64,000 nucleotides of DNA, from positions 124,001 to 188,000 of the forward strand of contig NW_020846105.1 in assembly GCF_003704095.1 (NCBI RefSeq), read 5' to 3'. This stretch comes from Pocillopora damicornis (Eukaryota). The notes beneath the pieces are model-generated. The model was not told the DNA's origin, ran no database searches, and saw only the letters and a list, made by a program, of their open reading frames with translations. A program made the position numbers and the translations under genes. The first letter of the stretch is position 1, and each line of letters begins with the position of its first letter. Shown piece after piece: positions 28,801 through 58,163 of the stretch.

Positions 28801-29830
28801 AGAACTGGGACATGGAAATGGTAAGTTGATTAAAATTTTGCTAAGTCTTTCGTTGCTTTGAAAACAAGTAGAGATAATTTGCTGTCATATCAGCATAACA
28901 CTCCCTAGCAATGCAGTTGTTTATTTTGATTGCCTTCTTCAGGACAGCATGCATATTAATTACCCTTTTTCATTTACAGGAAACTTCTCAAGCCTCTTTC
29001 TTGCCAGTGTGAATGAAACCAAAGTGGAAAATGACAAGGAAAGAAAAGGTCCACTCTTTATGGTGAAATTGCTCAAAGAAAAATACTCTTTGGAAGAGGA
29101 TAGAAGGAACTTTGAGAAAGATGCTATTGCCCTGACCACATTTAGCCACCCATATGTGCAAAATTTGTATGGTGTCTGTGTGGACAGCCCGCCTCTGTGC
29201 CTTGTGTTTGAGTTTTCAGAGCATGATGAATGCTTGCAGCAATTTCTCATTGAATCAGGCCGTGGTCATTGTTCAATCCATCGACGCACTGATATACAAA
29301 ATGCCAAACCAAAGCTGTCAAACATAGATCAGATATCCATTGCCAAGCAGATAGCAAGTGGTATGGAATACTTAGCAGATAAGGGTTATGTCCACAGAGA
29401 ATTGTGCACCAAGAACTGCATCATGGGCAAAGGAATGGTAGTCAAGATCTCAAACCTGGGTTTCTCTTGGAAAGGTCCAAATAGTGATTACTTCTCCTTG
29501 GGATCCACAGAGCGAGCTGGCTACCCTGTGAGATGGCTCCCCCCTGAAACCCTCCAGTATGGTGTATTTGAAGAGGATACTGACATCTGGTCATTTGGTG
29601 TTGTATTATGGGAGATTTACTCTAGTGGTTTAACGCCATACTATGGAATGAATGATGATGAAGTTATTTCTTTGGTGAATGGTGGAGACATTCTTCCTTG
29701 TCCAAAAGAGTGTCCCAAAGAAATGTATGAAATTATGCAAGGCTGCTGGAAGTTGATGCCAACTGAGAGGCCAAGGTTTAACTGCATTCATCACCAGATC
29801 TCATCACTTTTCAATGGAGTGCCTGTGTAA
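22820..29830 (+). CDS. Receptor tyrosine kinase-like protein: signal peptide, CUB, 3 Ig domains, TM, MuSK/Trk/ROR-class kinase domain with degenerate catalytic motifs (predicted pseudokinase)
   Basis: Exons 22820-22922 (hydrophobic leader, phase 1), 25856-26524 (CUB: CG...TPDYPKTYP..KCSWLI...YCG...FKSD...GFKASF, plus Ig1), 26859-26960 and 27175-27329 (Ig2), 27581-27743 and 28042-28202 (Ig3), 28527-28820 (TM, NPIY), 28980-29830 (kinase: HRELCTKN, KISNLG, PVRWLPPE, DIWSFGVVLWEI; ends GVPV*). Confidence 0.88.
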
Positions 29831-32151: not shown

Positions 32152-34098
32152 TCACATGGGTTGTTCTGCTCTATTGGCAATCACTCTTCTGTACATTTCA
32201 GTAACATACACCAGCACCAGTAAAATGATAAGTACATCATCCAAAAGACCAAGAAATCCAAACACAGACTCTGGAATGATGTCCAAAGGAGAAACAAAAT
32301 ATAAAGCTGCTGCGCAAAAACACAAGATGATTCTGAGTCTTAGAACCCAGACAAGTCCTCCAACAGAAAACAGCTCAGTAAACAGTTGATGAAGAAGAGT
32401 GGGCAGGTCATAAATGTAATCCATCCACTGCAAGAAAGAAAGGAATTGTTATAAGTGGAATTGTTGTTGTGAAAAATTATTTGATTGTTGTTTTTTTCAC
32501 TACACTCAAAATCACAGGAATTGTTCATTAAATGATTGGACAAAAATCTTTTTCTTTTGTTATTTCAACAATTTTTTTTTTCTCAAATTTAAATGTTAGC
32601 TTGATATATTATTCTGTGTGTAACCATCAGAAAGCCGGAATAAAGTTTCTGAGTTGTACAACATTGTAAAAAATCAACAGAGAGTGAGCTTTAGACAAAA
32701 CCAAAAAATTGAACTCATGCACAGTTATCTTTGTGAGGCTGCATTATGAGAGGCAAGTCAGAACTTAAATATTAAAATGCTTGTCCTAATTTTGGAAGAT
32801 GAAAATAATAAACGATAAATAATATTGAGAGTATACATTATGCTTGATCATGTAATTTACAAAAAAAATTTGTACATACTGTTGAAACACAAGAGGGGTT
32901 ACTTACAGGTCTTGGTATTCCTGAATATCTACGATTGTACTCATTCATATCATGTCTATGTTGTACTGCTTCTGGTAATGCTCTGTCCTCCTCAGAAAAA
33001 TTTGAAAATAGAATAGTGACCTGTGAAAAGACAAGAATTTAACTTAAACTCAGGTGTAACAGATTTTGCATTTGTGTTTTCCTCCTTGGTAAGATAATTT
33101 TGAAAACCAGCCGTTGTTTAGGAAATGAGCCTAAGCTCCACTCCTTAGACATAAGGACTGGGTTTAAGGGAGCAGTAATAATCAAGTGTAATGGTGCCAT
33201 GACTGAGCTGTGTTCTTTGTAACTCAAAACTTTATTTCCAACAAACTGACCTATAGATCAACCAATCAACTGACTTATAGATCAACCAATCAACTGACCT
33301 ATCTGACTAAAAGATTAGTTCACCAAGGAAGTAAATGACTTTCTGACTGTCTCACAGACTGAATGACTGACTGAATCAATGAGCGCTGACTGACTGTCTG
33401 ACTATGATGAAGCCCTCACCTGTTGTCTGCACACAGGACAGTTGATAGCACCAAGCCACCTTCCATACCTCCAGTATGTTATTATACATGGGGCTAAGAA
33501 AACAAATATATCGAGACTGTCAAGATATTAGCCAGAAAAGAAGGATGAGTACATGGAAACTTGATAACTACACATAAGAAGTCCTGGCATTTTTGTGTTT
33601 TTCCTTCGAGCGTTATAGTAAAGCGCAGGAAGAGAAAAACAAACCGAACAAAATCCTCAATTATATCTGTCAAACGATGATGTTACCGTGATAATATAAT
33701 CGGACATATATGTAAGGGAATTCAAAGAGAGACATACCACAAAAGACATGTCCACAATTGGTAGTGGTACAGAATTTCGTGTCTGTAAGACAAACAGGGC
33801 ACCGTCTATCAGTAGAATAAGTAACAGGTGGCGAATCGGGCAGAACTGGATCATCATTCGCTCCTGTATCACTTCCTTCTCGTCGGACTCCCAGTCTGTC
33901 ACGCACTACACGCACATGCTCTTCTTGTAAGGGATGAATGTTTCTTTGTCCTTGGGTGTTGTACAGAATACTAACTAGCGCTATGAGCCCAAGAGTCGAC
34001 GCCAAACCAATTAACACTTCATCTCCAACACCTTCCACTATTGTTCCTCGAGCGTGAAAGCGAAAATTTATGAGATCAAACAATAACATTAGCGCCAT
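32152..34098 (-). CDS. RNF170: ER-membrane RING E3 ubiquitin ligase RNF170
   Basis: Exons ~33738-34098 ([17 protein letters not shown]...TNCGHVFC), ~33420-33493 ([22 protein letters not shown]), ~32907-33020 (YNRRYSG.PR), 32152-32427 (DLPTLL...FSVGGL...[15 protein letters not shown]). Confidence 0.93.
33245..33405. repeat. 24-bp tandem repeat (~2.4 copies) followed by a degenerate (GACT)n tract in an RNF170 intron
   Basis: actgacctatagatcaaccaatca / actgacttatagatcaaccaatca / actgacctat, then gactgaatgactgactga...ctgactgactg. Confidence 0.7.
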
Positions 34099-34323
34099 TA
34101 CCTCTTTCTATTATCTGATCTCATCATACATGACAGTCCTATCCTCTGAAATGAAACTGCTAGCTAGGAAATTGCGGGCCCTTACAAGTCATTGATAACT
34201 TATCCAGCGGCGCGATATTTCTATGATTTTGTACTTCGTATAACGCAGTCAGTATTTTCTGATGAAATTTTCTGAAAAAGAGTGGGCTTTATTGTTGCTT
34301 TGAAAACTCTTCTCTTCGGAATA
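34099..34323. promoter_or_regulatory. Bidirectional promoter RNF170 / FARSA
   Basis: Divergent ATGs 225 bp apart. CpG-rich (gcggcgcg, gcgggccc) relative to the introns. Confidence 0.6.
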
Positions 34324-37300
34324 ATGGGTACTCAGTCCTTGGAGAGACTGGTATTAGAAGGTGTAGAAGAGAGAGGGAGTATCGAGACTTTCGAATTTGC
34401 TAAAGAACTCGGGAAAGATCATCAATCTATTGTTGGAAGTGTGAAGAGCATCCATGCTCTCGGGGATGTAAGTGTGTTCCTTGTGCAATGGGGATATTTT
34501 ATCGGTAATTTAATGAGAAAGATATTAGTAAATGGTGTTTTTTCGGGTGATTTTAAAGGTGATAAATGTTGAACAACGACAAGCCGAAGGCTGGGTACTG
34601 ACGGACGAAGGAAGTGAAGTGGTAGAGAAAGGTAGCCATGAGTTTCTGGTGTTTAAAGCTGTTCCGCCAGAGGGATTACCTCAAGCGGAAGTAAAGGTAT
34701 TCTATGAAATAGATTTTTGTGTGGCAGTTATTTGATCTCTTTTTATTTTGTGTGCACCGAATGAAGGAAACTCTCTTTACTTCCTTTGTTTTGATGAAAC
34801 TCCACATGGATTCTAAAGAGCAGGATGGATGGGAGGCTCCAAATTCCTTTTGACAGGGTGGGGGTGGTCTCCATGATTAATTATACCAAAACTGAAGTTA
34901 GCTGTGGTAGAAGGCTGCCTCTATTTTCATGTGTCATTTCTGAATATGCCTGTAAGGTACTTACAGGAAGTTAGGCATATGAGGGCAGATAAATGTCCTA
35001 AATACTATCATTTCATCATTATGCAAGGCTGAATCCTCTTCCCAAGAAACTCACAATATCGCTTCCATAATGTCATTGTTGTTTATCATTTTGTGTTGAC
35101 AGAAACTCGGTCCACATGCTAATGTTGGTTTTAGTAAAGCTATGTCAGCTGGATGGCTTCTGTTAAACAAGAATGCAGAGGGAGGACCTAGGGTAATGAG
35201 GAAGGTGAGAATAAAATGCTTGAAACACTTTAGACTTATCCTGTTCTTCACTTTTATAAAGTACACCTTGAATCAGCACTGTACAAGGATCATTCCATCT
35301 GTATTTCATCTGAATTTCATCTGTATATAGATGTTAAATCTAAACATAGTAGAGGTTACGCTTGTGTCCTCAAACTGTGAGCAGAAAGGATAAGTAAAAT
35401 AGCTTTTGCAGATACAGGAAAAATAATTTAATTATTTTTGGGCTTTATTTCTCCATTTAATCTTTCAAAATATGTTATTGAAGGCTGAGGATGTAAAAGA
35501 TGATGTCCAACTTGCACTTATAAAAATCAGAGATCAGCAGCTTTCAGACATCCCTGATGCAAAGATGAAAGAATGCAAGAAAAGGAAGCTCATTAAGACA
35601 CAGTAAGTGCAAATAGTGAAAGATTCTACCCAGCTTAGGTAAAGGACAGTACCTTCTCAGGACTGTTGACTTTCCTAATACTTTGCCCTGTAGATTACCT
35701 ACGAGTCATGTACAGTTTGTTTGCATTTGGTTAGGATCAATGAAACACAAAAGACACTTATACCAGGTGAAAGTACACTTCACCGAGAGTGTCAGCTTTA
35801 ATTCATACATAAAAACAGGGGTATTCAATTGAATAAGTTTCCAATTACATTTTAAGAAATTTTCATTGTTTTTTCAGGGTCATCAAGAGCTTTTATGTGA
35901 CCAAAGGCACTGAATTTACCACATCACCAACAAAACTAGAAGCTGATTTAACAGCAGACATGCTTGCAAGGTTGATTTCTTGAATATTATATAAAGTATC
36001 ATTGTTTTACTATTAATGTAGACAAGAAAAATTTTACTAAAGATTGAAATAAAATTCAATGAAATTTATTCTCTATTGTGACGGAAGTTATTTATCAATA
36101 GGTCACAGCAATGCATTTTTATTTTTTATCAGACGAATTGTGAATATTTTATCCATGTTTACATTTAGTGGTTCTTGGAAAGAGAAGCAATTCAAGCCAT
36201 ACAATTTTGATGCACAAGGAATCATACCAACATCAGGACATCTTCATCCTCTGATGAAAGTTAGAGCACAGTTCAGACAAATCTTCTTAGAAATGGGGTC
36301 AGTAGAGAAGTTTCAAAACTGATTCCTTTATGGTGTTATTCCCTTTATACTCTGAGGTCAGTTCAGTTGTAATGAAGAAGATGAAGACTACAAATTACTG
36401 AGGAGTGGTTGATCTTTTTTAAGGTTTACTGAGATGCCTACAAACAACTTTGTAGAGAGCTCCTTCTGGAATTTTGATTCATTATTCCAGCCTCAACAAC
36501 ATCCAGCCCGTGATGCGCATGACACCTTTTTCATGGCAGGTTAGTGACTACTGAATGTTGCATTGGTTAATAAATTGTCAATTCAGTTCTTCTAATATTT
36601 TCTTCTGCTTTTAGAACCAAAGTATGCTAAGCTCAAGGAAATGCCTGAGTCCTATATTGAAAAAGTGAAAATCATGCATGAATCTGGAGGACATGGATCA
36701 CAGGGGTAAGAACTAATTTCGCAACTTATTTTTTACACAATTCAATTTATACTTTGCAATTTAACAAACATTCCCTTGGCTTTGAAGTCAACCAGAGATA
36801 AATGCGCTACTCAGAAATGCAGTAGTAAGGATACTGGAAAAGCTACAGCTTTGATTGGAAGAATGACAACTGTATTTACTTGAATGGCTTTCAGTTTCTG
36901 GGGGTGATTAACACTAGATAAATGTGATTGATTTTTCAGATATAAATATGAATGGAAACTTGAAGAAGCCAAAAAGAACATTCTCAGAACTCATACAACT
37001 GCTGTTAGTGCAAGGATGCTGTACAAACTGGCTCAACAGGTTCTCAGCAATAGTTTTAGCTAATTTAAAAATTGTTTTATTGTATTTAGCCTGGTTGATG
37101 GAGCACAAAGATCTTTGATTTTACTTGTTTGAATATTATTAACTCTAACTTGTTTTTTCACTTTTCAATGTTGATGAATTAAATGTAGAAGTCAACTGAA
37201 CTATGTTTTACTTGCAGGAAAAATTCACACCAGCCAAGTATTTTTCAATAGATCGAGTGTTCCGGAATGAGACCCTAGATGCTACTCATTTAGCAGAGTT

Positions 37301-38308
37301 TCATCAGATTGAAGGTGTCGTTGCAGATTATAACTTGACTCTTGGGGATTTGATTGGAGTGCTCTATGAGTTTTTCAAGAAGCTAGGTTAGTTTTAAGTG
37401 TAACTTTTGGTATTTTTGTCACATTGGTAAAAGGGGATTTACTGTATGAAGCAGAAGAACTACAGTCCATATATCAATAATTTTTTTCCAATTCCACAGG
37501 AATTACAAAGTTAAGATTCAAGCCAGCATACAATCCTTACACAGAACCAAGCATGGAAGTTTTCAGTTATCATGAAGGTACTCATTAAATAAAATTTCTG
37601 CTTCATCAGATTTCATTTATAGACAACTAGAGCTAAATCAGCTGACTAGAACCAATCTTCTGGAGCACTCTAGGTAGTTGACTTCATTCATTTACACTCA
37701 TTTTTCTTGCCTGAAAAACACTTTCCATAGTCAGTATTGTTTGTGTGGTTATGAAGGTTTACATGATTTATTTACTGTATGTTACAATCAAAGATTTTAA
37801 CATTTTCAGGCCTCAAGAAGTGGGTTGAAGTTGGCAATTCAGGGGTTTTCAGACCTGAAATGTTACTCCCAATGGGCTTACCAAAAGATGTGTCTGTTAT
37901 TGCTTGGGGACTTTCCTTGGAAAGGTAAGTGTTCAGTGAGTGTTATCTGTTATTATTAAACTTATTGTCATGTTGTTTCCCATCTGTATTGCGTTTAAGT
38001 GTTAATTACCTTTCACCCCTTTGACTGTTTGTACATCTCAATAGTTGTATTGTGTACTTGTGGTGGATGTTTGTATCATCATGTAGTGTTACATAATTTA
38101 TATCAATTTGTTAGGTTTTTTTGTATAAATTTTGAGTGAAAAGGTTTATCCAATGTTGGCTGATTGCTCTTTATTTTTGATTTACATTCACTCCAGGCCA
38201 ACCATGATCAAATACAAGATTTCAAACATTCGGGATTTAATAGGACACAAAGTGGACCTTGAATTGGTTCACAAGAATCCCATTTGTCTTCTGGAAAAAT
38301 CTAATTGA
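34324..38308 (+). CDS. FARSA: Cytoplasmic phenylalanyl-tRNA synthetase alpha subunit
   Basis: Multi-exon gene with the motifs [103 protein letters not shown]. Stop TGA 38306-38308. Confidence 0.97.
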
Positions 38309-40250
38309 ACAAAATAATGTATTCCACTTTAATCTTTGTTAGAGTGATGTTGAATATTTGTACAGAATTCTTGTCTTCACAATGTTACCAACAACTTGTC
38401 AAGTTTCAATGTATGTACTTGAAAAAAGAAAAGTAACCTTTTTTTTAAAGAGGCAGTAGTATTTGAAACTGGTCTGTGCAACCAGTAAGTGTAACACCTG
38501 TTCTTTTCTTAGCTGTCATTCAGTTGGAATGGGTTTGTGCATTGCATTTGCTTTATAATAAAATTTAAGCTAAAGGATTAACATTAATTTTGAAACTTCA
38601 GCTTTAGGGCCTCTCTACAGCAGCCAATTTACATTATCAACTCAGTTGACTAAATCAAAGTAAATGAATGGAATGTTAAGAAACTCACATGCAAATTTGA
38701 AACTACCAGTAACCCAGAAAATCATCAGACTGATGCTTGTTGCTTTCTTTAATTGTTTAGTGGTTAATGAAACTTTTGGGCCAGTCTTTGTCACCCCCTT
38801 GTACTCCTCTCCCCACCATTCTCTCCTCTATCTTTACTCCACTGTTACAAAAGTGTGGAGACTGGGGCTTGTGGCTGGGTGATAAAGACTCCCATAAGTC
38901 CATCCAAGGAGAGCTGTAAACGTAATTTGGGGTTTTATAACTTACTGGGGCTCCATATTTACAACAGAGCAAAGTTATTGTGCTATTGTTTTCTAAGCAG
39001 AACTTTAGTCTTTTGTCTCTTGCTCAAAGCTGTTGCGTCCTTTTTTAAAGGCAATTTTTGACATCACAAAAAGAAAACAATGCAGTAGATACAGTATAAA
39101 CATCTTGAAGATGCTACACTTGGTAACACAATTTCAATGTCCACTGCTAAATAACATTGTTAAATGAATAGTTGGATCTTTTGCCACTGGTAACTTATAA
39201 CTTAGCAGAGTTGTGTATAGTGGCAAGAAAAGTCTGCAAATAAAATCTGCATTATAAGATGTCTGATGTGTGATAACTTATTTCTGTATACCTTGTAAGT
39301 CTTACTCAATGTTACTCTGTTCAACCAATGAACAGAACAGAGCCAAGCAAGTTTATTGATGGATCAGAACTCTTCATTCACTACTGGCAAACACCACTTT
39401 AGAGAGCGGAAATATTAAAGGATGTGGCACCACATGACACCAAAACAATGGAAGTTTCTTTATTGCTGTAACCCTTATGTAGTGTTGTACCAAATTGAAA
39501 AACAATCGACACATTGCAAGGTGGGAAGACTTTTGCAAAAAGGTACCTATCATGATTCAGACTAGTGATGATCACATCAACCAGGTTGATTATAAAAATT
39601 GCAGGTGTCAGCTTGAAAAACCTTCTATAGTGGCCAGTTACTTTATCATCTCAGCTGATAAAACCAAATTATCTTGAATGCCCCCAGTGATGCAACACCT
39701 CAGTTTGTTTAGAATGTACCCCCTTTATTCATTTGGTGATGACTAACATTTCAGTCCAGCTCTCTGAACAACTTAAACCAATGTTGCCTCTACTGAGCTA
39801 GTGGTAAGTGAATACACACAAATGAGTGGGTAAGTACCAGGGTTTCTGCAACTAAGCCCCCTCTTTCAGTCATCCCCCCAAACAAATTGCCTTGAACAAG
39901 CAAATGTCATTACCATGTAGGGAAGACAGAATACCTTCCATGGGTGGAAAACAAAGATTTGGCCACACAGTTTGTTAACTCCTACAAATAAATATGCCTC
40001 CTTAAATAACATGTTCATTATGTCATATGTTTCTCTTTAAAGGTTAGAATTTTCAACTCTAACTGACATGTACAATTAGCTGTAGACCATAACACTCTAT
40101 TCTAACAAATTTATGTTCCTCAATGGTTTATAAAGCTTAATAAGCCTTGAACTCCTAGGAAAATACTTATCTTATTTTATTGATTTTATTTAGATTATAA
40201 AAGTAACAGTTCATACTGACACTCTCAAATGGCACTATAAATTTCTACAA

Positions 40251-43200
40251 TCAGACATTTATCTGTTTCTGCCTGATCAAAATTGCATTACGGTGAGCAT
40301 CAAGTTTCTCCACAGCGGCAAGTGTTGCCACTGCTGGTCCAATGTTAGCCAAACCCTCCTCTGTTACATGCTGGGCTGTGATGTGTTTCTGGAATGATGC
40401 TGTTGATACACCACTGTACATGCGTGCATAGCCATATGTTGGAAGGGTGTGGTTTGTACCACTTGCATAGTCTCCACAACTCTCTGAAGAATATGGCCCA
40501 AGAAATACAGACCCTGCATTCTGTATATCTTTTAAAGAATCTTCAGCATTCTAGAAAGCAAACAAATTATATGATATTAAAACAATTTAAAGGGAAAAAA
40601 ATTATTTCAGCAAGGTTGTGATTGTTAATTTAATTTTTTCCCCTCCTCTATATGATATAAGCTTCTTCAAACTTCTCTTATTGCCTGTTGACCCTTTACC
40701 CCACAAGAGTGATAAGGATCTAATTTCTCCCAACAGTGTCAGGAAATGAAACAGAGAATGAAGGAAATGATTGCAAACTCAAGAAGCTCCCAATTGTCAG
40801 GCAAACTCTCCCTACTATATTACAGGAAATGTATAGAGAAGAGTTTGGAGAATATGCACACTAATTTTAGGGTGTAGAGGGTTAAGTTAGATTTAAACAT
40901 ACAAAGCACATGAGTCACACAGGACAGGAAGAAGCCCTTACGCCTCTTATTATGCCTTTTAATATGTTTGCAACTCTAAGCTTCAAAGCAGTTCTCCATG
41001 ATTAAATCTTATACCACGGTATGTTTGTACAACTGGTGGGCTCATACACTTGGAACAACATTCAAAGTATCTTGCCCATTAGCAAACCTTTGTGTTAATG
41101 ATGAGATGTTCTGGAGCATATTTGTTACTGAAGCACAGAGCCTGACTCATATTTGACACTTTTATTACAAAACTCTTTGAGAGAGACTCTCTGACAATTT
41201 TTTCCCGAGGCAGTTTCTTTGCTTGAGCATCCACTTGACTCTAAAAAATTATGAAAAAATAAACTATATATTAATGAGGCACCAATTAAATATCTTGTGA
41301 AGACTACATTTTTTTTGCCAAAACAAATCCATGTTTTGCTCTTTCACTTAATAACCACCTAAAGGCAAATTAACCCTTGAACTAGAAAAAGTGATTTACA
41401 TGTAACGTCTCCCTAAAATATCCATACATTATCCAGCAAACAAATAATCTGAATACTCAAACTTATCAGGTAAAAATAAAAATATAATCTGTCACCTGAA
41501 TCATGGCAAGCTGGTTGTCACTCAAATTAACAGCTACCAACACCACTTGACTGTCTGTTCCATGCTCTGCCTGGGACAACAGATCAGCTGCCACAAATGA
41601 GGGATCTGCAATTGCATCAGCAATGACCTGTTGATTACAGAAGAACAAGAAAGATATATAAAAAACTGAAGCAAAGATGCATGGAGTACCCAGGATACAA
41701 AACAAAGTGATATAATGATTGTACCATTACTAATGGCACCAGAGAAAGACAAGATACTGAGTGTTTTGCACCCAAGGATGGGGGTAGAGATCTACTGTGG
41801 GTGTGACATGCACACCAACCCCCATCACTGCTACCCAAATGAGAAACTAGTTAATATTTAGAATAATTATAAGTGTAGTTGAACAAAAAAATATTACAGT
41901 GTGCTTCTACATTCATGATGACAGTGTATGACACCATTGAAAAGCCCTGCTTGGGTCCCTAAGAAACAGTGACCAACCCTTTGGGCCTTAGGGTTAGGCT
42001 TTAGTTTATAGATATATTTAATATATCTGACATATCCTTTTTTGGATTCAAGATAACAGAACTCCAATGGATTCTTTTTCACTTAGAGTTACTAAGTAAC
42101 TAATATTGATTTTACACACCATAACTTCTGATGGTCCTGCAGGCATATCAATACTGACACAAGCTGAGCTATCATTTTGCACCAACATTTTGGCCATAGT
42201 TACAAATGAGTTCCCTGGACCACACAGTTTGTCCACTTTAGGAACACTTTCTGTTCCATAAGCCATTGCTGCCACCGCTTGAGCCCCACCTGACTCAAAA
42301 ATAAAAATCCTTTGGTACTGAGCTCAATTACTTAAAAAAAAGAGTAAAATTCAAAGGTTCAATTTTTTCCTCAAAAAAATTTAGAATCTCAATGAACCTG
42401 AAGCATTCAGGTTTATTGCATTCAACAATAGGATAACACAAACACCTGATCAAATGCAACCTCTGATACTGTTTTCTTTCCATGACCAATAATTTCAGTA
42501 CCTGCTAGTAATATTTTGGAGATGCCAACTTTCTTTGCAATGTAAAGGATTTCAAGAGAAACTGAACCATCTTGCTTGGGTGGGGTGGCCAGAATAACCT
42601 CTTTGCACCCTGCTACCTGGGCTGGAATACCCAGCATAAGAGCAGTTGATGGCAAAACAGCACTACCACCAGGAACATACAAGCCAACCTGCAACAAACA
42701 AATTTCAAACAAGAGCTATTAACCAGCAAACTATGAAGGGATTGGCAGTGCATGACCCTTAACAGACCTCCAAATAAATCAAAAACAAATTGAAGAAGAC
42801 TTCTGTTTGAGTTGAAATAAGAGGAAAGAACTTCCAGAAAAACAAGATCCCCTTGACTGATATCAGATGGAATACAATTGATTTATTGTTCATTCAGCAA
42901 TGCTGAACTGCTATAAATACCATGAGCACACCATACTAGCTTATTTAACCACAAGATGGAATTTTGAAGTGTTTACTCACTCTTTCAATGGGTCGAACAT
43001 GTCGAGAGCACACCACACCCTTGCATGTTTCTACCACAAGAGGCTCCAGGTCAAGTTGTGCCTTATGGAATTTGTAGATGTTGTTGTAAGCCAAATCAAT
43101 TGCATCTTTGACCTCCTTATCAAGAACTGGTTCATCTGTGGCAGACATGTTGATCACAGGGCTGCTCAGCTTAGCTTTATCAAACCTTTCTGTTAATTCT

Positions 43201-45559
43201 AGCAAAGCCTTGTCTCCATAAGTTCGCACATTGGTCAAAATCGGTCCCACAATAGCTTCTAGTTTCTCTTTGTCAACCACTGCAGGACGTTTACAAAGAT
43301 CTTGTAATTCCTTATAATTAAGAAGCTCAAAATCAAAGCTTCTTAAAACAGAGTTTTGTGCACTGACTGTAGATGAGTTAGCTTGGGCAGGAGCATGTAC
43401 TTTTGTCTTGGTTATAGAATGGCCATTACGGGGAGACAATTTGCCAGGTTTTGCATTACCAGGACGTCGTCTAACCTTGAGTGACCTTTGATCCAGAACT
43501 TTTTCAATATCACTCAGAGAAACTCCTAAGAAAAAGGAATGTAACAACAAAATCTGATTTTCTATTTCAAACAAATACAAAGCTCTAAAATAAGTCATTG
43601 CTTTGCTCAACACTTTTATCATCATCATTACTATCATCATAATAGTTTCTTTACTTCATGGGTAGACTTCCCTCTCTTAAACCAGCAATTCCCCCAATGT
43701 CTTAAAACTGTCTCCCTGCCCCCCCTCCAGATATCTGTTTCTCTCTGACATTGACAATCCATAAAAATGTACCCAGCAGACAATCATTGTCACTCATCTT
43801 CCCCTTCCCTAAACACAGCTTTTACTCACCTGCCTTGGCACATTTCACTAGTGTGAAATACAAAACATCAGCTGCTTCCCAAGTAATCTCCTCTTTTGTT
43901 TCAGATTCACACAATTCCTCTGCCTCTTCACGGATCTTGGCATGCAGCAGTTTACTGTCATTGTACAAGCGACTTGTGTAGGATCCTGGAGGAGCTGACT
44001 CTTTGCGGGACTTTAATGTATTCATCAGTAATGGTAAACCATTGTTATCTCCAAAGCAAGTCCATGTGTTAAGGTGGCAGAATCCTTGTCCAAGCTGACG
44101 TACAACAAACTTCAGGGTATCACAATCACAGTCTAAATGAATTTGCAATAAATCCTGCAAACAAAATTTTATTTGAAAATTCAATCCTTAAGCTCAGACA
44201 AGACAAAGATTCTTTGTGTTAGAAAAAGAGAGTTAGCTCCAAAGTTTGCTTTTTCCAAAATCCAAAAAGTAGACTTTAAGGGCAAGAGCTTGCTTTCTTC
44301 ACCAACTCAGACTTAGACATCATTTTTTTTCATACTCAAGAATTTACCTGTTGGTTTCCAGATGTTTCCCCTTTCCTCCATAATCCTCTTTTTCTTGAAA
44401 AATACACCCCTTTCTTGGTTTTCACTGCTTCTTGAATACTCTCAGAACTTGAATAACACAATCCTAATGCAATATTATGCTCATCTGTCTGAGAATGACA
44501 ACAAAAAAGTGTGCAGTTTAATAAAAATTAAAGAAAAAAAACTGAGTTATGTTTCACATTGAGTCCCACACCTCTGCCTCATCAGATTCAGACTCTATCA
44601 TGCATCTGACATCTTATCTTACTTTCTGTACCTTATCAGCTCCTTCAAAACATACCACCCCCTCCCTTCTCTCTCCAAGCCACCTCCTCCCTCAACAAGC
44701 ACTGGTTGAAATCAATGAGGGGTGTGCACAGGGTTTTACTATGAGAAGTGGTGGGGAAAGGATCCTTAACTAGCATCTTACCTGCATTTGGTGGCATTTC
44801 AAGTTGTTCTACCATAGTAAATCATTACCTTTTCTGGACATGCACCTTAAAACCTCCCACAACTGACCCATGTCATATACATAAGAGACTTACCACAAGA
44901 GTTGGGTAGAGTCCATCAGATCGGTCACTTTTAAGACAGGATGCGATAATCTCTCCAAGACTGAGATCATTTAGCAACCAAGTTGTACTTAGTTGAACCT
45001 GAACTCCGAGGAAGTGAAGCTGTGAGATGGTTGAGGACAAAATCACCCCATCGATTGATAGTATGAGTTTCACATCGTCACACAGGTGGGTCTTTAGTTC
45101 CTTTATAGACTCGACAAGGCATGATTCATCAGCAAGGGAAGCTTTTTTAGGACACAAAAGAAAAGTGCTAGATCTGTGTTTTAGGTCATTGATTTCTTCG
45201 GCCAACTCAGCTACAGAGTACTCTTGATCAGGTAATTTGCAGACAATCCTTTCTCTGGGTAAAAATTCTCCCAGGCTATGCAGTTGGTGATCTTTGTTAA
45301 GGATGACACTGTTAGCACCAGAATCCAGTATATCTAAGACCTCGTCTTCAGAATTCAGTTCAATTTCTACGCAACAAGAGGTCCTATGCATAACTTTCTT
45401 TCCAAATTCTTTTGTCTCCTGGACTTTATCAAGATAAACGATGGTAAACTCTGGGCACAAAGAAATTGTATCGAGGCAGCCTGTTACATCTTCAATTTTT
45501 TCCCCATCCTTTGGATCCACTAGAGTCCCTCCTTTCAGATATACACTTGGGATTATCAT
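40251..45559 (-). CDS. HIS4: Histidine biosynthesis trifunctional protein (PR-AMP cyclohydrolase / PR-ATP pyrophosphohydrolase / histidinol dehydrogenase; fungal HIS4-type HisI-HisE-HisD fusion)
   Basis: Nine in-phase exons: 44894-45559, 44348-44488 (ALGLCYSS...[18 protein letters not shown]), 43830-44154 ([15 protein letters not shown]; [24 protein letters not shown]), 42981-43525, ~42502-42688 (VGLYVPGG), ~42120-42289 ([18 protein letters not shown]), ~41496-41627 (DLLSQAEHG), ~41088-41240 (YAPEHL), 40251-40550 ([17 protein letters not shown]; stop TGA). Confidence 0.95.
40688..40885. mobile_element. Family B-related MITE in the last intron of the HIS4-like gene
   Basis: ttgaccctttaccccacaagagtga ... 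ggtgtagagggttaa terminal inverted repeats. More degenerate relatives at ~25069-25250, ~25630-25818 and ~41370-41470. Confidence 0.55.
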
Positions 45560-45699
45560 TTTGAACGTGCTGAATTTTTGAAAATAAAAATATTAAAGTG
45601 GAAATCATCACGTGGAGGGCCGAAAATGGGACCACATTTAATACATCAGCGGTTTCATCGCAAAGCTCATGCCCCTTCCACGCATGCACGAAAATCAAA
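45560..45699. promoter_or_regulatory. Compact bidirectional promoter between the HIS4-like and YIPF1 start codons
   Basis: Divergent ATGs at 45559 (-) and 45700 (+), 140 bp apart. CpG-containing; E-box TCACGTGG at 45608-45615. Confidence 0.65.
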
Positions 45700-48600
45700 A
45701 TGGCGGAGAGTGATGATGAAGTCGGCCTTGTTGACGTGAAGGTAAAACAGCTTATTTCCCAACCTTTCATTAATTAGACTTCACAAATAAAATAAATTAA
45801 TTATTTTCTTACGAAACTCTTCGTTAGCGGTATTAAATAAAAAGTATATTTAAATTCAGCAAAACCTGATCTAATGTATTTTCCATGCTGCCCAATGCAA
45901 GCTATACGCTATGGAGCTTTACATTTTCTTGAATTACTCCTGGAATATCCCTTGCCTTAAGTTCATTTTCATTGAATTAAAGCGACGGTGGTAGTCAAAA
46001 AGTTTGTATGTGTTTAGCTTTGAATGGATTCAGCCTCGGTCACAAAACCTGAATCAAATCAGTGATCTGTGGCTTTTAGGGCACGATTTAAATACTAATT
46101 ACTGAGTTTTGAACAGAGGAAGCTTTCGTTCTTATTTATTTTTTTTTTAATAAAAAAGAATCACAATTCGATATTTATTCGGAAACAATGCTTGAGCCAA
46201 AAGTTTTGGATGTAAACTGTGCAATTAGCATATTAATGAATTAATTTTTAGATGGAGGATGGAGGAGGAGCTGGTGAAGACTTCACATTCCAAGGTTTGA
46301 AATTAAATTTGATAAGGTGAAAAAATATCAAAACACAATAATCAAAATAATTTGAAAATTATTGGCCTGTGCAGTATCATTTTCATTACCTTTATTAATG
46401 AGTCATTTGCATTTGTGATGCTGAGCAAATTAATCATGCCCTTACAAACACATTATTATTTTTTGTGCAATTTGTGGCTGGAGTTAACCAGAGGCCTTTT
46501 TCTTTCAGATTTTACTAGAGGAGATGACATAAATAATCTTAACACTGTTGGTAATATTGGTGAAGAACCTGGAAGAACGATCCCTGCTAATTTGAAAACA
46601 CAATCACTGGAAGACTTCTCTGATGGTAGTCCTTTAATACATATTCTGTTCAAATTAAGAATAGTAACAGATCAATGCATAGCAACTCTCTCTTGTGCAT
46701 CTGTGGATCAGATTGTGTATAGTTCAAGATAGGAATCTTTATTTGATTTGTGATTGGTTAACTTCATCACCAGAAGAAAACCAGCTGTGTAAAGCTGAAT
46801 TTTAAAAATAAAAATTGGGAGTGACTACATATAGTAATGATAAGAATGAAGGTTCTTTTATGACTGCATTATCCTTCTCTGCTATAAAATTAAGAGGTTG
46901 CAGAATCATTCTTTTAATTTGCTGTTTTCTTCACTTGCAGATGATGAAGAAGATAAAACAGAGGTTTGCATAGCTTAGTTTAATTTCATGCTGCTTGTTA
47001 ACGTCATAACTTGACTCTAGTTTTGCAGTTATACTGGTTTTAATTATATTAATTAGTGTTTTTAGCTTTTAGCTGGGCAGCGAAAACAACCACCTTTCTG
47101 GACATTTGAATATTACCAAACCTTTTTTGATGTGGACACATACCAAGTAAGATTATTACATATTGAAGCCATGAAATTTTAAATGATACTAACAGTGTTT
47201 TGCCTTTAATTTTGTTTTTGAAGAAGTTTGCATAAAATGAACTGTTTTCAATGAAATTGAGAGATTGATTTTCACCTCTGAAACATTCAAGTTCTTCCTG
47301 GATTGTTCTGTGGTTCTCTAGGCCTCCTAAACCAACATAACTTTTTTTGTTTTTAAGGTCCTTAGGAGGATTATAGGATCAATGGTACCAGTCTACAAGA
47401 AAAACTACCTTGTGTCTTTTATTCGTCCAAATCCTGATCTTTATGGTAGAGTATAAATGTCATTGTATCTATCATTTTTTTTAACAGTACAGGATATATT
47501 TAAAAGGTATGTTTTGAAAATTACTTCAATTATTGACATTGCTTAAATTTTAGGTCCCTTCTGGGTGTGTGCAACACTTGTATTTACAACAGCAATATCT
47601 GGTAACCTGGCAAGCTATCTGATCAACAGTGGAGACCATGAATGGGTGTATGATTTCCACAAAGGTAAAATTCCATGTGAAATATTTCTCTATTCGTATC
47701 ACCTGTTCCATGGATGTAGAGAATCTTCTAGCCTTTCTTAACACGTAAGCCTTTTTATAAAACTATTGTCAGTAATTACTACTATCACATTTTCATCCAT
47801 GACAGTCACTCTGGCTGCAGCAGCCATATACACATATGCCTTCCTGGTACCAACAGCTCTTTGGGGAGTTCTTCTTTGGAGAAGAAGCAATGCAGGATAT
47901 TCCTTTCTAGAAATACTCTGTGTTTATGGTTATTCCTTGTCCATCTATGTCCCAATATCAGTAAGTTGTGAGAGATGAATGAAATATATTAGATAAAGAA
48001 ATAAATGGATAAGAAGACCTCTCCAAAAATTCTCAACTCTTTCACTCCCAAGATCTTGAGTCACTTATCTTTCTGCAATAATCACTTATACTGCCATTCT
48101 GAGAATTTTTTTTGTTTCAGTGAACAATCTTCAGATTTCCGTGGATAGATTCTCTTTGTGTATGTTAAGGAGAGATGTATTTCATGTTGGACAACTGACA
48201 GACTGACTGGCTGTTCAAAATATTTCTACAGTGAATAATATTAATATTGTTTCCCCTCAGGTGTTATGGGTTGTCCCATTGGAATGGTTAAGATGGCTTC
48301 TTGTTATGATAGCAATGATTCTCTCAGGTAAGGAAAAAACTAAGACATAGTGTTTTAAATGAAACAATTTTTTTCCTTTAAGGCAACTTTGTAATAGCCA
48401 CTGTGACAATTTTACAGGTGCTGTGCTATTGTTAACATTTTGGCCGGCGGTTGAAGATGATGACAAAAAGGTATGAAGCTGTGAGGAAACTTGCAACTCA
48501 GTTTCTGTCATTAGCCTTTTATTTATTTCTGTTTTGTCTGCATTTTCTGGTTCAAGAGCTGGATCGTTAACTAAGATTTTTTTCAAATCTGCTTCATTCA

Positions 48601-53800: not shown

Positions 53801-54426
53801 TTTTGTATAACTGTTACAGAATTATGCTGCTTTGAATTTTGTCACTGTGCACACACCTGCACCTACTAATGACTATTCTATGGTTAATCTTCACAATCTT
53901 GTACACTTATATCAGTAGCTTTCATATTTGATGCATGGACCATGTCTTAGAGACCAGATGTCTGTCTGCATCTGATCATCAATGACTCGCCAATTACACA
54001 TAATAACTGAAAATGAAAACAAAGCTAACTTGTTCTAAAAATGATCATGGTTGACCTGTAATAGCTTCCCTCTTGCGACGTTTCTTTGTTAACACTGATG
54101 ATAACCATGATTTTTTTTTCAATCCTTTTTGGCCATTATGTCCTAATAAACCAATATGAAACTGAAGAATGTTATTTTACACTGATCAATTTTAAAACAG
54201 GTATGACAATGATAACTTACGCATGAATTACATTACACAAACAAAGTATTCATGGATATGGACTATGCTGTGAAAATTTAATTAGTGCACAAAATTTTGA
54301 CAGTTCTCTTTGTCTTCTTTCAGGTCATTTATAGTGCATCAATTATACAGTTCAAGTCTTTTGTGTCTTGCTGAGCCCTTGACTGGTTAAAAAAGCTGCA
54401 TATTAAAATCTATTGTTTAGAATAGC

Positions 54427-57400
54427 ATGCCGAAAGAGATGATAAATGGCTTACCTAGGGAATCGCTAGTTCTCAACAAAGTTGCAAAGCCCAAGAGAGT
54501 TGTTTCTGCTTTCCATCAAACCAGTTTACCCAGTGGTATAGTTAAGCAGAATAATACAGATTTGTTTGTCAGAGGTGATGACACTCATGAGAATGGTAAT
54601 GGAGTGGAATCATCTGGAACCCCACTTGTTATGCGGAAAGATCGTCTTGTTCAAGAGATAGAAAACAGCCTTGCAGAAATAGAGGACCATTATTCTAACA
54701 CCAGCAAATTAGAAGAAGAGAGGTCTGTTGTTGAAATGGAAAGGAACTCTCTCCTGAAAGATATTGAAGAGACAATAACAGAAATTCAGAATCATGTGCT
54801 GAATTCATCTGATGTGGCTTTTGAGAAAGAGGCTCTGCAGGATGAGTGTGATGGTTTGCGTGATCAAGTGGATCATTTGAAAACACTTTTAGATAATTCA
54901 GCTGGCTTGGAAAATGGTGATGAGAATGATGATTTGTCCCATGAATTAAAGCAACAAAACCTTGCTTTGAAAGCGGATATTGAGAATTTAACTTTAGAAA
55001 ATGAACAATTAAAAGGCAAAGGTCAGAATACTAATATGGGTGATCATACATCAAATTTATTGGCCAGAGAACTGGAATTGTTACATGATGAAAATGAAAA
55101 CCTGCAAAAACTTCTTCAAATGGCAGAGGAATCAGAAGGCAGTATTACTAAAGAACTGACAAATGCTCAATCAAAACAAGCAGAAATGCAAAAGCTGAAT
55201 GAAAGCTTAAAGAAAGAAAATAAAAAGCTGAAATCCTTGAAAGAACAACTAGAATTAGACAGGGAAGAGCTTGAGGAAGAGGTGGATAGTTTGCAGAAGA
55301 GGTTGAGTAACAGTGGAGATCAAAATGGAAATGTTGTAATGCTGAAGGTAAAATTTTTGAATTTTCAATTTCATTTCTTGGAACTGATTTTTATTCTGAG
55401 GGAATAGCGTTCACCTTCTTTAAGTATGCAACTTAATTCTATAGCATATGAAGTTGAATGTGGACTGATGTTATTGAACTCTCATTGGCAGTTGACTTAA
55501 GAGTTCCAGTTTTGTTATCACAACTAGAGGTAGAGAAAGTTATTGCCATTTCTTTTCATAAAGATCTCATCTCAATTTTGTCGATAGTGGTTGTATGTGT
55601 GTGTGGAGTCTATTTTCATTTGTTCTAATTAAGAACCAAAGTTGGTCTGAGAAGGAGAATTGGCTGCCATCATCAACTATTGGTTGAGCTAACAATTCAC
55701 CACTCTTTTAATTTTTTCTTAGGAATCAAAAGAAGATCTAGCTAAATCGGAAAGAAAGTGCACCCTACTTGAGAAAGAGAAGAGTGCATTGACTAAGAAA
55801 GTTGATCAACTTGAAAAAGAAATACAGCAACTGAAGGAACAAAAAGAAAAGGTATCAGAAAATGCATCGCCTAAACCCACTCAGAATGTTCTACAGTTGA
55901 AGTCAGCTCTTGAAAAACTGAACAAGGAAACATCCACACTTCATGAATCACTGGAAAAGGCAGAGAAGGAGATAACATCTCTGAAAGAAGATCTGGAAAA
56001 GGAGAGGGAAGAGAAACAAAAGTGGAGAGCAAGTGCAAGTGAAAAAGGGAAAAAGCAGAAAAGTCAAAAAGACAAAGAGAGTGAAGTTAGTAGAACTAAT
56101 GATGATCACAGCAGTGAAGTGGAACCTTTCAAGAAAGAAATTTATAATTTGAAAAGTGAATGTGAGTGTCTGTCAGAGACTGTTGCTAAGACTGCAAATG
56201 AAAAACGTCAAATGGCTAAAGAAATGGAAGCACTTAATCAAGAAAAGACAAAACATGAATCAAAACTTGTTGAACTTGAAGGGATCATTGAGGAGTTAAC
56301 AAAAATCAAGACAGAGAAAGAAGAATTAGAGGGAACATATTCAAATCTAAGAAATCTTCATCAAGAACTTGCTCAGAGGCTACAAATCGCCAATAAAAGC
56401 AACACTGAAAAAGATGAAATACTGCAAAGAACTTCAAGTGAGAAACAGTCAGTTGAAAAACTCTGCAAAGAATATGAGGACACCATTGAAAAGCTAAAGA
56501 ATGACTTAGCCCTATCCAATAAAAATTTAGTAACCAAAGAGGAGGAAGTAAAACTGATCAAGAGAAATTTGGATGATCAGAAGAGAGAGTTGTCTGCAGC
56601 TTGTGAAGAAGAGAAACAAGAGAAGCATAAACTTCATGAGGAAATACAAGAAATGTCTGCCAGATTGAAATCTTCTGAGGGAGAGTTAAACTCTGTACGT
56701 CAGTCTCAGGCAAGTAAAGGATCTGAACTTCAAAACTTAAGAATTATGGTTGATGAGATCCGAAAAGAGTTAAAATTAACACAACAGAATTTACGAGAGA
56801 CAGAGGAAGCAAGACTTGTTGCAGAAGAAAAGGCTGATTTGGCTGAGAAGGCCAAAGAGGATTTGGAGAAGTCTAATGCAGTTTTCAATGATATGGCTAT
56901 GGAGAAATCTCTAGAGCTCTCTCGAATGAAGAGGAATTTGGAAAAAAAGGTGGAGAAGCTTACAAAAGAAAACAGTGAACTGCGGAAGAAACTTGGACTT
57001 GACATACCAAGCTCAACCAGGTCTCAGTCACCTCCAAGGCTGTCTCCTGTAGCTGTTCAAATGCAGAAAATCCCAAGCCTCGATGTGAACTTGGAACACC
57101 TTTCTAAACCATCCCAGAGACAACGCAACAATGGTCTGCAAAGGCAGTCTCTGGATCAAAGTGCATCATCTCTACAGAGGGCTGTAAATGGTCCAGTGTC
57201 TGATAAGAGATTAAGACGCTCAAGTGTGGATAGTGACTCTGCTGTTGATTACCAGAATCAAAGGAAATATGTGGATGATTTTGTAAAACCTCTTCGAAAG
57301 GCAGAAGTTGTTAATTCTGTTCCCTCAGAATACAAGGTTGTTGCTTCTGAAGCTCCTTCAGTTCCCCCAAAGCAGCAGTTCACAAGCTCTGTTGTGCATG

Positions 57401-58163
57401 TTATGTCATCACCAGGAGGTAGTCAAAGTTCCACAGCAGCAAGAGAGGATTCTGGGTTCCAAAGAGCAACTTACGGTAATCATTGGAGAGATAGTGAAAG
57501 AAGCAGGGAAGAAAGAAGAGTTGAGGAACAGAAATGGGAGGAGAAAGAAAGGTATATGTGTAGAACAGTGCCTAGTAATTCATTTTTTTTTTTTAGTTGC
57601 TAGCTGAATAAGAAATACATGTGTGTATATGATGCACCAACTCTTCTCCATCTTTTCCTTGCTACAGTAATTTATTACAACAAGAAAGATGATAAATTTT
57701 AAGCTTGATTACCAGTTACAGATGGATGTTTTTCAGTTTGTTCATGAGAATGGGATAAAAGAAAGATCTGAGTGCCCCATATGAAACTGAGCCCCAGAAT
57801 TTCAGACTCAATATCTTTCCTTTTCCCATGCTCATGACCTAATGAAGAAAACTTGTCACATGAACAAGATAATGGCCCAGATTACCACTGAGTTCTCTCT
57901 ATGGTGGAACTTAATGCTAGAGTGTCAAATGTTAAAATCAGATCATCTTGGTTTTTAATTCCTTGCAACAAGTAATCATTAATCATCATTGTAAGTGTAA
58001 TTTATACACTTGTGATGTCCAGAGATGACCATGCTTTATATACAAGCTCTCTTTACTTTACAGGCCACCAGAAAACACAGTTAAACAAGACAATAGTGAA
58101 TCTGCATTTCAAGTTGTAGGATATCGGAAAGGTGGAAAAGTCATTCATGAACACTGGGTGTGA
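54427..58163 (+). CDS. Uncharacterised long coiled-coil protein (~949 aa) with a Ser/Pro/Gln-rich tail ending GKVIHEHWV
   Basis: Exons 54427-55347, 55723-57551 and 58064-58163 join in phase (2850 nt). E/K/L-rich heptad pattern over most of the length. A likely non-coding 5' exon ends at the GTGAGT donor near 51064, with acceptor near 54323. Confidence 0.8.

Follow-up and report, generated by a model that had tools for sequence, protein, structure and literature searches.

A spliced HIS4-type histidine biosynthesis gene in the robust-clade stony coral Pocillopora damicornis, with a possible HisA-like barrel in its N-terminal region

We analysed a 64,000-nt window of the Pocillopora damicornis genome (RefSeq assembly GCF_003704095.1, 234,350,878 bp in 4393 pieces; contig NW_020846105.1, positions 124,001 to 188,000, that is, scaffold C2740:124001-188000), in which a gene for a HIS4-type multifunctional enzyme of histidine biosynthesis was identified on the minus strand. 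All positions are numbered on this window. The gene extends from the ATG at 45559-45557 to the stop codon at 40253-40251, an exact match to the span 40251-45559 given in a preliminary description made from the sequence alone. Six-frame reading combined with inspection of the borders yielded a coding sequence of nine exons, comprising 2619 nt, or 872 codons and the stop. All eight introns are of the GT..AG type, with phases 0,0,1,0,1,0,0,0, and the nine in-phase exons proposed earlier are borne out, the phases being consistent and RNA joints being present at every border. HisD is single-copy, with one locus in the whole 234-Mb assembly.

Exon 1 (44894..45559, minus strand as for all exons) is an open frame of 222 codons counted from the ATG, the donor of which, at 44893, is confirmed by an RNA joint between 44488 and 44894. 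Residues 1 to ~208 are predicted to form an N-terminal HisA-like barrel, whereas the last ~12 residues are the start of PRA-CH. Exon 2 (44348..44488; 47 codons) carries the first half of PRA-CH (HisI), with a match to positions 2-40 of the 74 positions of PF01502 (E 2.8e-11). Exon 3 (43830..44154), which ends in phase 1, holds the second half of PRA-CH (PF01502 positions 39-73) followed by PRA-PH (HisE; PF01503 positions 4-72), and includes the motifs DCDCD and CHxxxxxC of HisI and KIREEAEE and WEAAD of HisE. Exon 4 (42981..43525) completes HisE, continues through a low-complexity linker and opens HisD (PF00815 positions 6-111 of 411). The remainder of HisD is distributed over exon 5 (42502..42688; PF00815 107-172), exon 6 (42120..42289; 167-225), exon 7 (41496..41627; 224-257, with the SQAEH motif), exon 8 (41088..41240; 267-317, with APEHL) and exon 9 (40251..40550; 319-410, 126.6 bits), the last of which carries the HisD C-terminus with GDY...NH and DAH and then the stop codon. 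Exons 2 to 8 are flanked by RNA joints, and exon 9 is connected to exon 8 by the joint between 40550 and 41088.

The profile searches were done per single exon, and the bit scores are accordingly exon values or sums of exons. Across exons 2 and 3, PRA-CH (PF01502) was covered from position 2 to 73 of 74. PRA-PH on exon 3 scored 63 bits with PF01503 and 63.7 bits with TIGR03188, against a cut-off of 42.7 for the latter. Histidinol_dh (PF00815) was covered from position 6 to 410 of 411, collinearly over the six exons 4-9, with ~459 bits in sum, and the NCBIfam matches agree with the Pfam domain calls. The best matches among solved structures were Medicago HisD (5vlb), Escherichia coli HisD (1k75) and HisIE (6j2l). 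In the alignment to 1k75, SQAEH corresponds to Gln259 and His262, APEHL to Glu326 and His327, and GDY...NH together with DAH to Asp360, His367 and His419; these seven positions of the E. coli enzyme (Q259, H262, E326, H327, D360, H367 and H419) we take to serve as Zn ligands and in acid/base catalysis. The DCDCD and CHxxxxxC motifs align to DCDND and CHxxxxxC of 6j2l, and the acidic HisE motifs EExxE and E..D also align to that structure. Thus, all of the HisI, HisE and HisD motifs that had been named as intact are present and find their counterparts in 1k75 or 6j2l. From these intact catalytic motifs we infer four enzyme activities. The domains are arranged in one polypeptide in the order N-terminal region, HisI, HisE and HisD, and the nine exons are collinear with fungal HIS4.

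The exon structure is supported by transcripts. In an index of sequencing runs, RNA runs contained a fraction of 0.47-0.61 of the words sampled from the 5.45-kb locus, a stretch in which the coding sequence makes up 0.48. We placed the contigs of four RNA runs, which come from four studies and include three polyA libraries, on positions 40000-45800. All eight introns were seen as joints in RNA contigs with CT..AC ends, located exactly at the predicted borders, in contigs of the four studies, so that the splicing suggested earlier as a point to be checked by RNA sequencing was found at every junction. Furthermore, single RNA contigs of 2.2-2.4 kb cross exons 1-7 (run X12) or exons 1-8 (run X6, 2416 nt) with no indels; together with the consistent phases, these contigs, which show no frame changes, back the order of the domains in a single polypeptide. 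The RNA contigs of the gene extend to 45624-45641, indicating a 5' untranslated region (UTR) of at least 65-82 nt. Six additional runs of unrecorded type, drawn from two studies, contain 91-94% of the words of the locus and therefore include the introns as well.

In low-depth RNA contigs, we also observed an alternative, frame-shifting acceptor at 42330, which lies 41 nt upstream of exon 6; others retain intron 8 (40523-41117), and both variants look like splicing noise. A further RNA contig (run X1, 2357 nt, 38195-40552) continues from the last exon of the gene leftward for another 1.8 kb, toward the 3' end of the neighboring gene FARSA. This contig suggests long or overlapping 3' UTRs of the two genes, although a contig spanning two genes is no proof of one transcript.

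To assess conservation, we compared exon 4 with 1.84 billion representative proteins. The search returned seven exon-sized coral-type fragments with 55-73% identity, followed by full-length fungal HIS4 proteins, and no full-length coral proteins were among the matches in this set of representatives; for fungal HIS4 the identity of exon 4 was 40-47%, compared with 73% for coral-type fragments. L028, the locus from which the closest fragment comes, lies on a coral-type contig of 1.04 Mb and matches all nine exons end to end, with the same borders and phases, over 12.5 kb. In a more distant coral-type locus (L029), the borders of exons 2-6 are kept and the introns are much longer. Comparison of the gene with L028 by summed Nei-Gojobori counts gave a nonsynonymous rate (dN) of 0.15 and a synonymous rate (dS) of 1.35, with a dN/dS ratio of 0.11. 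The per-exon ratios range from 0.008, the value of exon 6, to 0.19, with 0.18 for exon 1, and the codon comparison indicates strong purifying selection on every exon. Additionally, a tree of the exon-4 region was constructed with IQ-TREE (56 rows, 188 columns), in which the coral-type rows form one clade (support 88/84) outside every supported fungal subclade.

We then searched the assembly for the rest of the pathway and found seven pathway genes, unlinked and on seven scaffolds, although support for HisG is weak at the level of single exons. Besides the present gene, which supplies HisD (scaffold C2740, one locus), these are IGPD in one intronless frame of 210 aa (C3883, 216 bits); a HisH-HisF fusion with GATase and His_biosynth in a single open frame (C130); a eukaryote-type HisA (hisA_euk) in five exon pieces with ~226 bits (C538); HisC in four exon pieces with ~288 bits, the cut-off being 276.6 (C2801); a histidinol phosphatase of the PHP (hisJ) type with 141 bits (C2969); and HisG in at least nine short exons (C1472:144.6-149.5 kb), where HisG and HisG_C pieces are collinear and the N-terminal exon was recognized by eye. 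The His_biosynth profile PF00977 found the HisH-HisF locus only, and the separate HisA gene was found by TIGR02129. In whole-genome Pfam and TIGRFAM searches, HisG gave one weak match only, and an incomplete pathway lacking HisG was considered and rejected, as the frames around this match show many short HisG exons. All six remaining genes that the preliminary description had suggested looking for were thus located in the same assembly. Two further intronless frames, of 452 and 439 aa (C3290:93610-94473 and C517:109797-110417), gave weaker matches to the hisC model and are probably other class I/II aminotransferases; the absence of introns in these frames is unusual for this genome.

The gene lies between FARSA and YIPF1, the two flanks named in the preliminary description; FARSA is tail-to-tail with it, beyond the 3' end of the gene, and YIPF1 is head-to-head with it at the 5' end. 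FARSA, the phenylalanyl-tRNA synthetase alpha gene, occupies 34276-38305 on the plus strand (PheRS_DBD1, E 6e-15; tRNA-synt_2d, E 4e-21; other exons recognized by eye). On the other side, a YIPF1-like gene of the Yip1 family was identified on the plus strand, its 5' part spanning 45700..47975, with an RNA-backed donor of its exon 1 at 45741 and a weak Yip1 Pfam match (E 0.029) on 47742-47975; the Yip1 Pfam matches were under the cut-off when exons were searched singly. The two ATGs are separated by a divergent intergenic region of 140 bp (45560..45699), which may act as a bidirectional promoter common to both genes, or the transcripts may even overlap. Farther out, a tyrosine-kinase exon (28862-29827, plus strand, 230 bits) is followed by an RNF170-like gene on the minus strand (32155-34107, with a RING finger exon and a DUF1232 exon), which is situated between FARSA and the kinase gene, and a coiled-coil protein gene is located at 54421-57600 on the plus strand; its two open exons, of 328 and 626 aa, are very long, are rich in Glu and Lys and show weak Pfam similarities only, to APG6_N and GAS. 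The head-to-head arrangement recurs at L028, where YIPF1 exon 1 lies on the opposite strand ~100 bp upstream (L028:3977-4172); FARSA was not found in the 4 kb downstream of the L028 ortholog, a locus too short to judge its presence. The 41.5-kb stretch 20546-62046 is free of gaps, so the description of the contig as ungapped holds around the gene, but not for the window, which contains eight N runs elsewhere. The GC content of the locus, 0.37-0.39, is at the upper end of the window range of 0.28-0.39.

Intron 7 contains a dispersed host repeat of ~105 bp (41368..41475), for which a first look at the genome gave 2907 candidates; the 40 other copies listed are all on other scaffolds and share 73-92% identity. 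An earlier assignment of this element to the miniature inverted-repeat transposable elements was right as to a dispersed host repeat in an intron, but the proposed class finds no support, since an inverted-repeat search of five introns found no terminal inverted repeats. RNA-contig depth in the bin containing the repeat (41358-41551) was 190-1400, compared with 20-130 for the exons, meaning that transcripts throughout the genome contain the repeat in abundance.

Histidine counts as an essential amino acid for animals. Taken together, the data make it very probable that this is a nuclear gene that a robust-clade stony coral has inherited vertically, and that it encodes a HIS4-type multifunctional histidine biosynthesis enzyme of 872 residues, in which a degenerate HisA-like barrel would be followed by PRA-CH (HisI), PRA-PH (HisE), a linker and histidinol dehydrogenase (HisD). 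The HisE domain would hydrolyze phosphoribosyl-ATP to phosphoribosyl-AMP (step 2 of the pathway), the HisI domain would open the purine ring to yield ProFAR, the phosphoribosylformimino derivative of aminoimidazole carboxamide ribotide (AICAR; step 3), and the Zn- and NAD-dependent HisD domain would oxidize histidinol via histidinal to histidine (steps 9-10). With the six other host genes, the animal could make histidine from phosphoribosyl pyrophosphate and ATP without its algal symbiont, with a flux through the pathway that we infer. Such a host-encoded pathway would free robust corals from algae or feeding for histidine, and this independence bears on the choice of symbionts and on survival after bleaching, a significance already set out in 2018.

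Several points weigh against this interpretation. The study that reported the gene in robust corals could not directly demonstrate its function (Ying et al. 2018, PMC6214176). The RNA support consists of assembled contigs, not raw reads, and gives neither the level nor the strand of expression. The best single exon of HisG reached 26.6 bits, and parts of the HisG profile have no located match. Finally, the backbone of the exon-4 tree is unresolved (35/73), and vertical descent rests mainly on the introns, synteny and published analyses.

The nearest full-length relatives of the gene are all fungal, from Actinomortierella, Blastocladiella, Ascoidea, Melampsora and Zancudomyces, and the fungal-type N-terminal region is common to the coral gene; these observations, along with the lack of other animal sequences among the exon-4 matches and the poorly supported backbone, would fit an ancient horizontal transfer from a fungus to the coral ancestor, followed by intron gain. 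We consider this scenario unlikely, given that the seven pathway genes are unlinked on different scaffolds and several transfers would be needed, that the borders of the eight introns are conserved across divergent coral-type genomes, and that the coral clade falls outside the supported fungal subclades. Conserved synteny, a clean absence in complex corals and the presence of pathway genes in corallimorpharians have also been reported, and loss was argued from them (Ying et al. 2018, PMC6214176). The phylogeny that had been put forward as a check thus separates the coral-type clade from the supported fungal subclades, but leaves the deep branching, in a tree of one exon, unresolved. Ying et al. 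argue for retention from the ancestor that animals and fungi share, and this view is favored because the coral clade is separate, the introns and synteny agree, and seven transfers would otherwise be needed.

A different possibility is that the gene is expressed and conserved, but that no net histidine is made, with the enzymes serving another role, for example in purine- or AICAR-linked metabolism, or with the pathway running only in part. This we regard as quite improbable, and somewhat more so than transfer: the seven pathway genes are all present, the catalytic residues of HisD, HisI and HisE are intact, and the strong purifying selection extends to every exon. Furthermore, HisD is not known to have an established function other than in histidine synthesis. 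On the other hand, HisG, the committed step, is weakly documented in the assembly, and Ying et al. (2018, PMC6214176) suggested non-histidine roles for those pathway genes that complex corals and Nematostella have kept.

Contamination by an endolithic fungus or symbiont, or misassembly within the scaffold, could be suspected from the fungal best matches and from the fungi and algae present in coral samples, but is extremely improbable considering that the GC content of the locus lies within the window range, a host-wide repeat is embedded in intron 7, no gap separates the gene from its animal neighbors, YIPF1 starts 140 bp away with the same arrangement on an independent 1-Mb contig, and the six further runs from two studies hold nearly all words of the locus, introns included. 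The earlier view of a functional host gene, as opposed to contamination, is accordingly upheld by the spliced RNA, the host repeat in the intron, the gap-free animal neighbors, the conserved borders, the dN/dS ratio of 0.11, the intact residues and the pathway set.

A fungal-like histidine pathway of seven genes was described in robust corals by Ying et al. (2018, Genome Biol 19:175, PMC6214176), who reported it in Fungia sp., Goniastrea aspera and Stylophora pistillata, and its absence in complex corals as well as in sea anemones. In that work, PRA-PH, PRA-CH and Histidinol_dh are combined in a single polypeptide (K14152), the trifunctional gene is flanked by YIPF1 and SYFA, and the pathway genes are all unlinked and all contain introns, except for IGPD (PMC6214176). 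The three domains, the introns, the YIPF1 and SYFA (FARSA) flanks, the seven unlinked genes and the intronless IGPD are all reproduced here, and only the species differs, P. damicornis not being mentioned in PMC6214176; nor is histidine mentioned in the paper on the published P. damicornis assembly. Thus, the finding is confirmed, but is not new, the gene with the same neighbors having been known from robust corals since 2018, and its initial characterization as rare but not wholly new was right, if understated, considering that gene, flanks and pathway were all in that report (PMC6214176). The accompanying statement that the pathway occurs in sea anemones, however, is contradicted by the absence reported there (PMC6214176). 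What our analysis adds is an RNA-verified, exon-exact gene model in one more robust coral, the dN/dS values with their signature of strong purifying selection, the presence of the seven genes in this assembly, and an assignment of the N-terminal fold; the residual novelty would lie in this last, model-based assignment.

Fungal HIS4 of the Saccharomyces cerevisiae His4 type has the same domain order, with an N-terminal region of 160-220 aa and a variable linker (Fani et al. 2007, PMC1963479). The conserved exons of the coral gene are 42-87% identical to fungal HIS4, compared with 22-32% for the N-terminal region, and, unlike the fungal genes, the coral gene has eight spliceosomal introns, animal synteny and a clade of its own. 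Plant HISN2 (HisIE) and HISN8 (HisD), as well as bacterial HisIE and HisD, share the catalytic domains and residues of the coral gene, but are separate polypeptides without the N-terminal barrel, and the plant proteins carry transit peptides (PMC1963479).

The N-terminal region encoded by exon 1 gave no Pfam or NCBIfam match at E<=0.01. It is collinear with the N-terminal region of fungal HIS4 at the low identity given above (BLASTP E 1e-5 and 8e-8), a region that Fani et al. (2007, PMC1963479) described as 'of unknown function' and as lacking detectable homology. Exon 1, 13 coral orthologs and 7 fungal-type proteins were aligned together, and this alignment served as the basis of an AlphaFold2 model, in which the region (~205 aa) folds as an eight-fold beta/alpha barrel with a predicted local distance difference test score (pLDDT) of 84.8 and a predicted template modeling score (pTM) of 0.83. 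The top Foldseek match of the model was yeast His6 (E 1.2e-7), and the top 50 consisted of HisA, HisF, designs derived from HisF and a single de novo design. With the VIA aligner, run against 48,161 chains, HisA ranked first (4gj1, Z 19.8; 1qo2, Z 18.0; yeast His6 2agk, Z 17.4), ahead of HisF (Z 16.0) and of unrelated TIM barrels (Z <= 13.9). In addition, a protein-language-model search with the region placed His_biosynth in 24 of the 30 nearest clusters. A profile of the N-terminal alignment searched against PDB sequences recovered no HisA or HisF chain at E<=10, and the link to HisA is therefore at the level of the fold only.

The catalytic features of HisA do not appear to be preserved. HisA carries a catalytic Asp on strand beta-1; at the position expected for it, the coral orthologs covering the site (9 of 14 rows) all have Tyr or His and the fungal rows have Ser or a gap, and no Gly-rich phosphate loops were seen in the exon 1 region by inspection. 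HisA (ProFAR isomerase, His6 in yeast) thus has a predicted (beta/alpha)8 barrel in common with the coral N-terminal domain, but the coral region lacks both the beta-1 Asp and the sequence-level family match, and the genuine hisA_euk gene is separate. On the basis of the structural model, the N-terminal domain is probably a conserved, non-catalytic remnant of HisA. The chances seem to us evenly balanced that the region would be a catalytically degenerate, HisA-derived (beta/alpha)8 barrel and HIS4 a four-domain fusion, pseudo-HisA/HisI/HisE/HisD, predating the split of animals and fungi. If true, this would revise the textbook picture of HIS4 as a protein of three regions. We found no paper stating such a reading in the literature searched, although it may already be visible in structure databases. 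As the product of HisI is what HisA acts on, one can speculate that the remnant could bind ProFAR, dock the real His6 or scaffold a complex. Among the fungal homologs, the Ascoidea rubescens HIS4 protein (P0008, 1414 aa) has an extra N-terminal extension of 620 residues before the exon-1-like region, perhaps the result of a fused gene model or else an additional domain.

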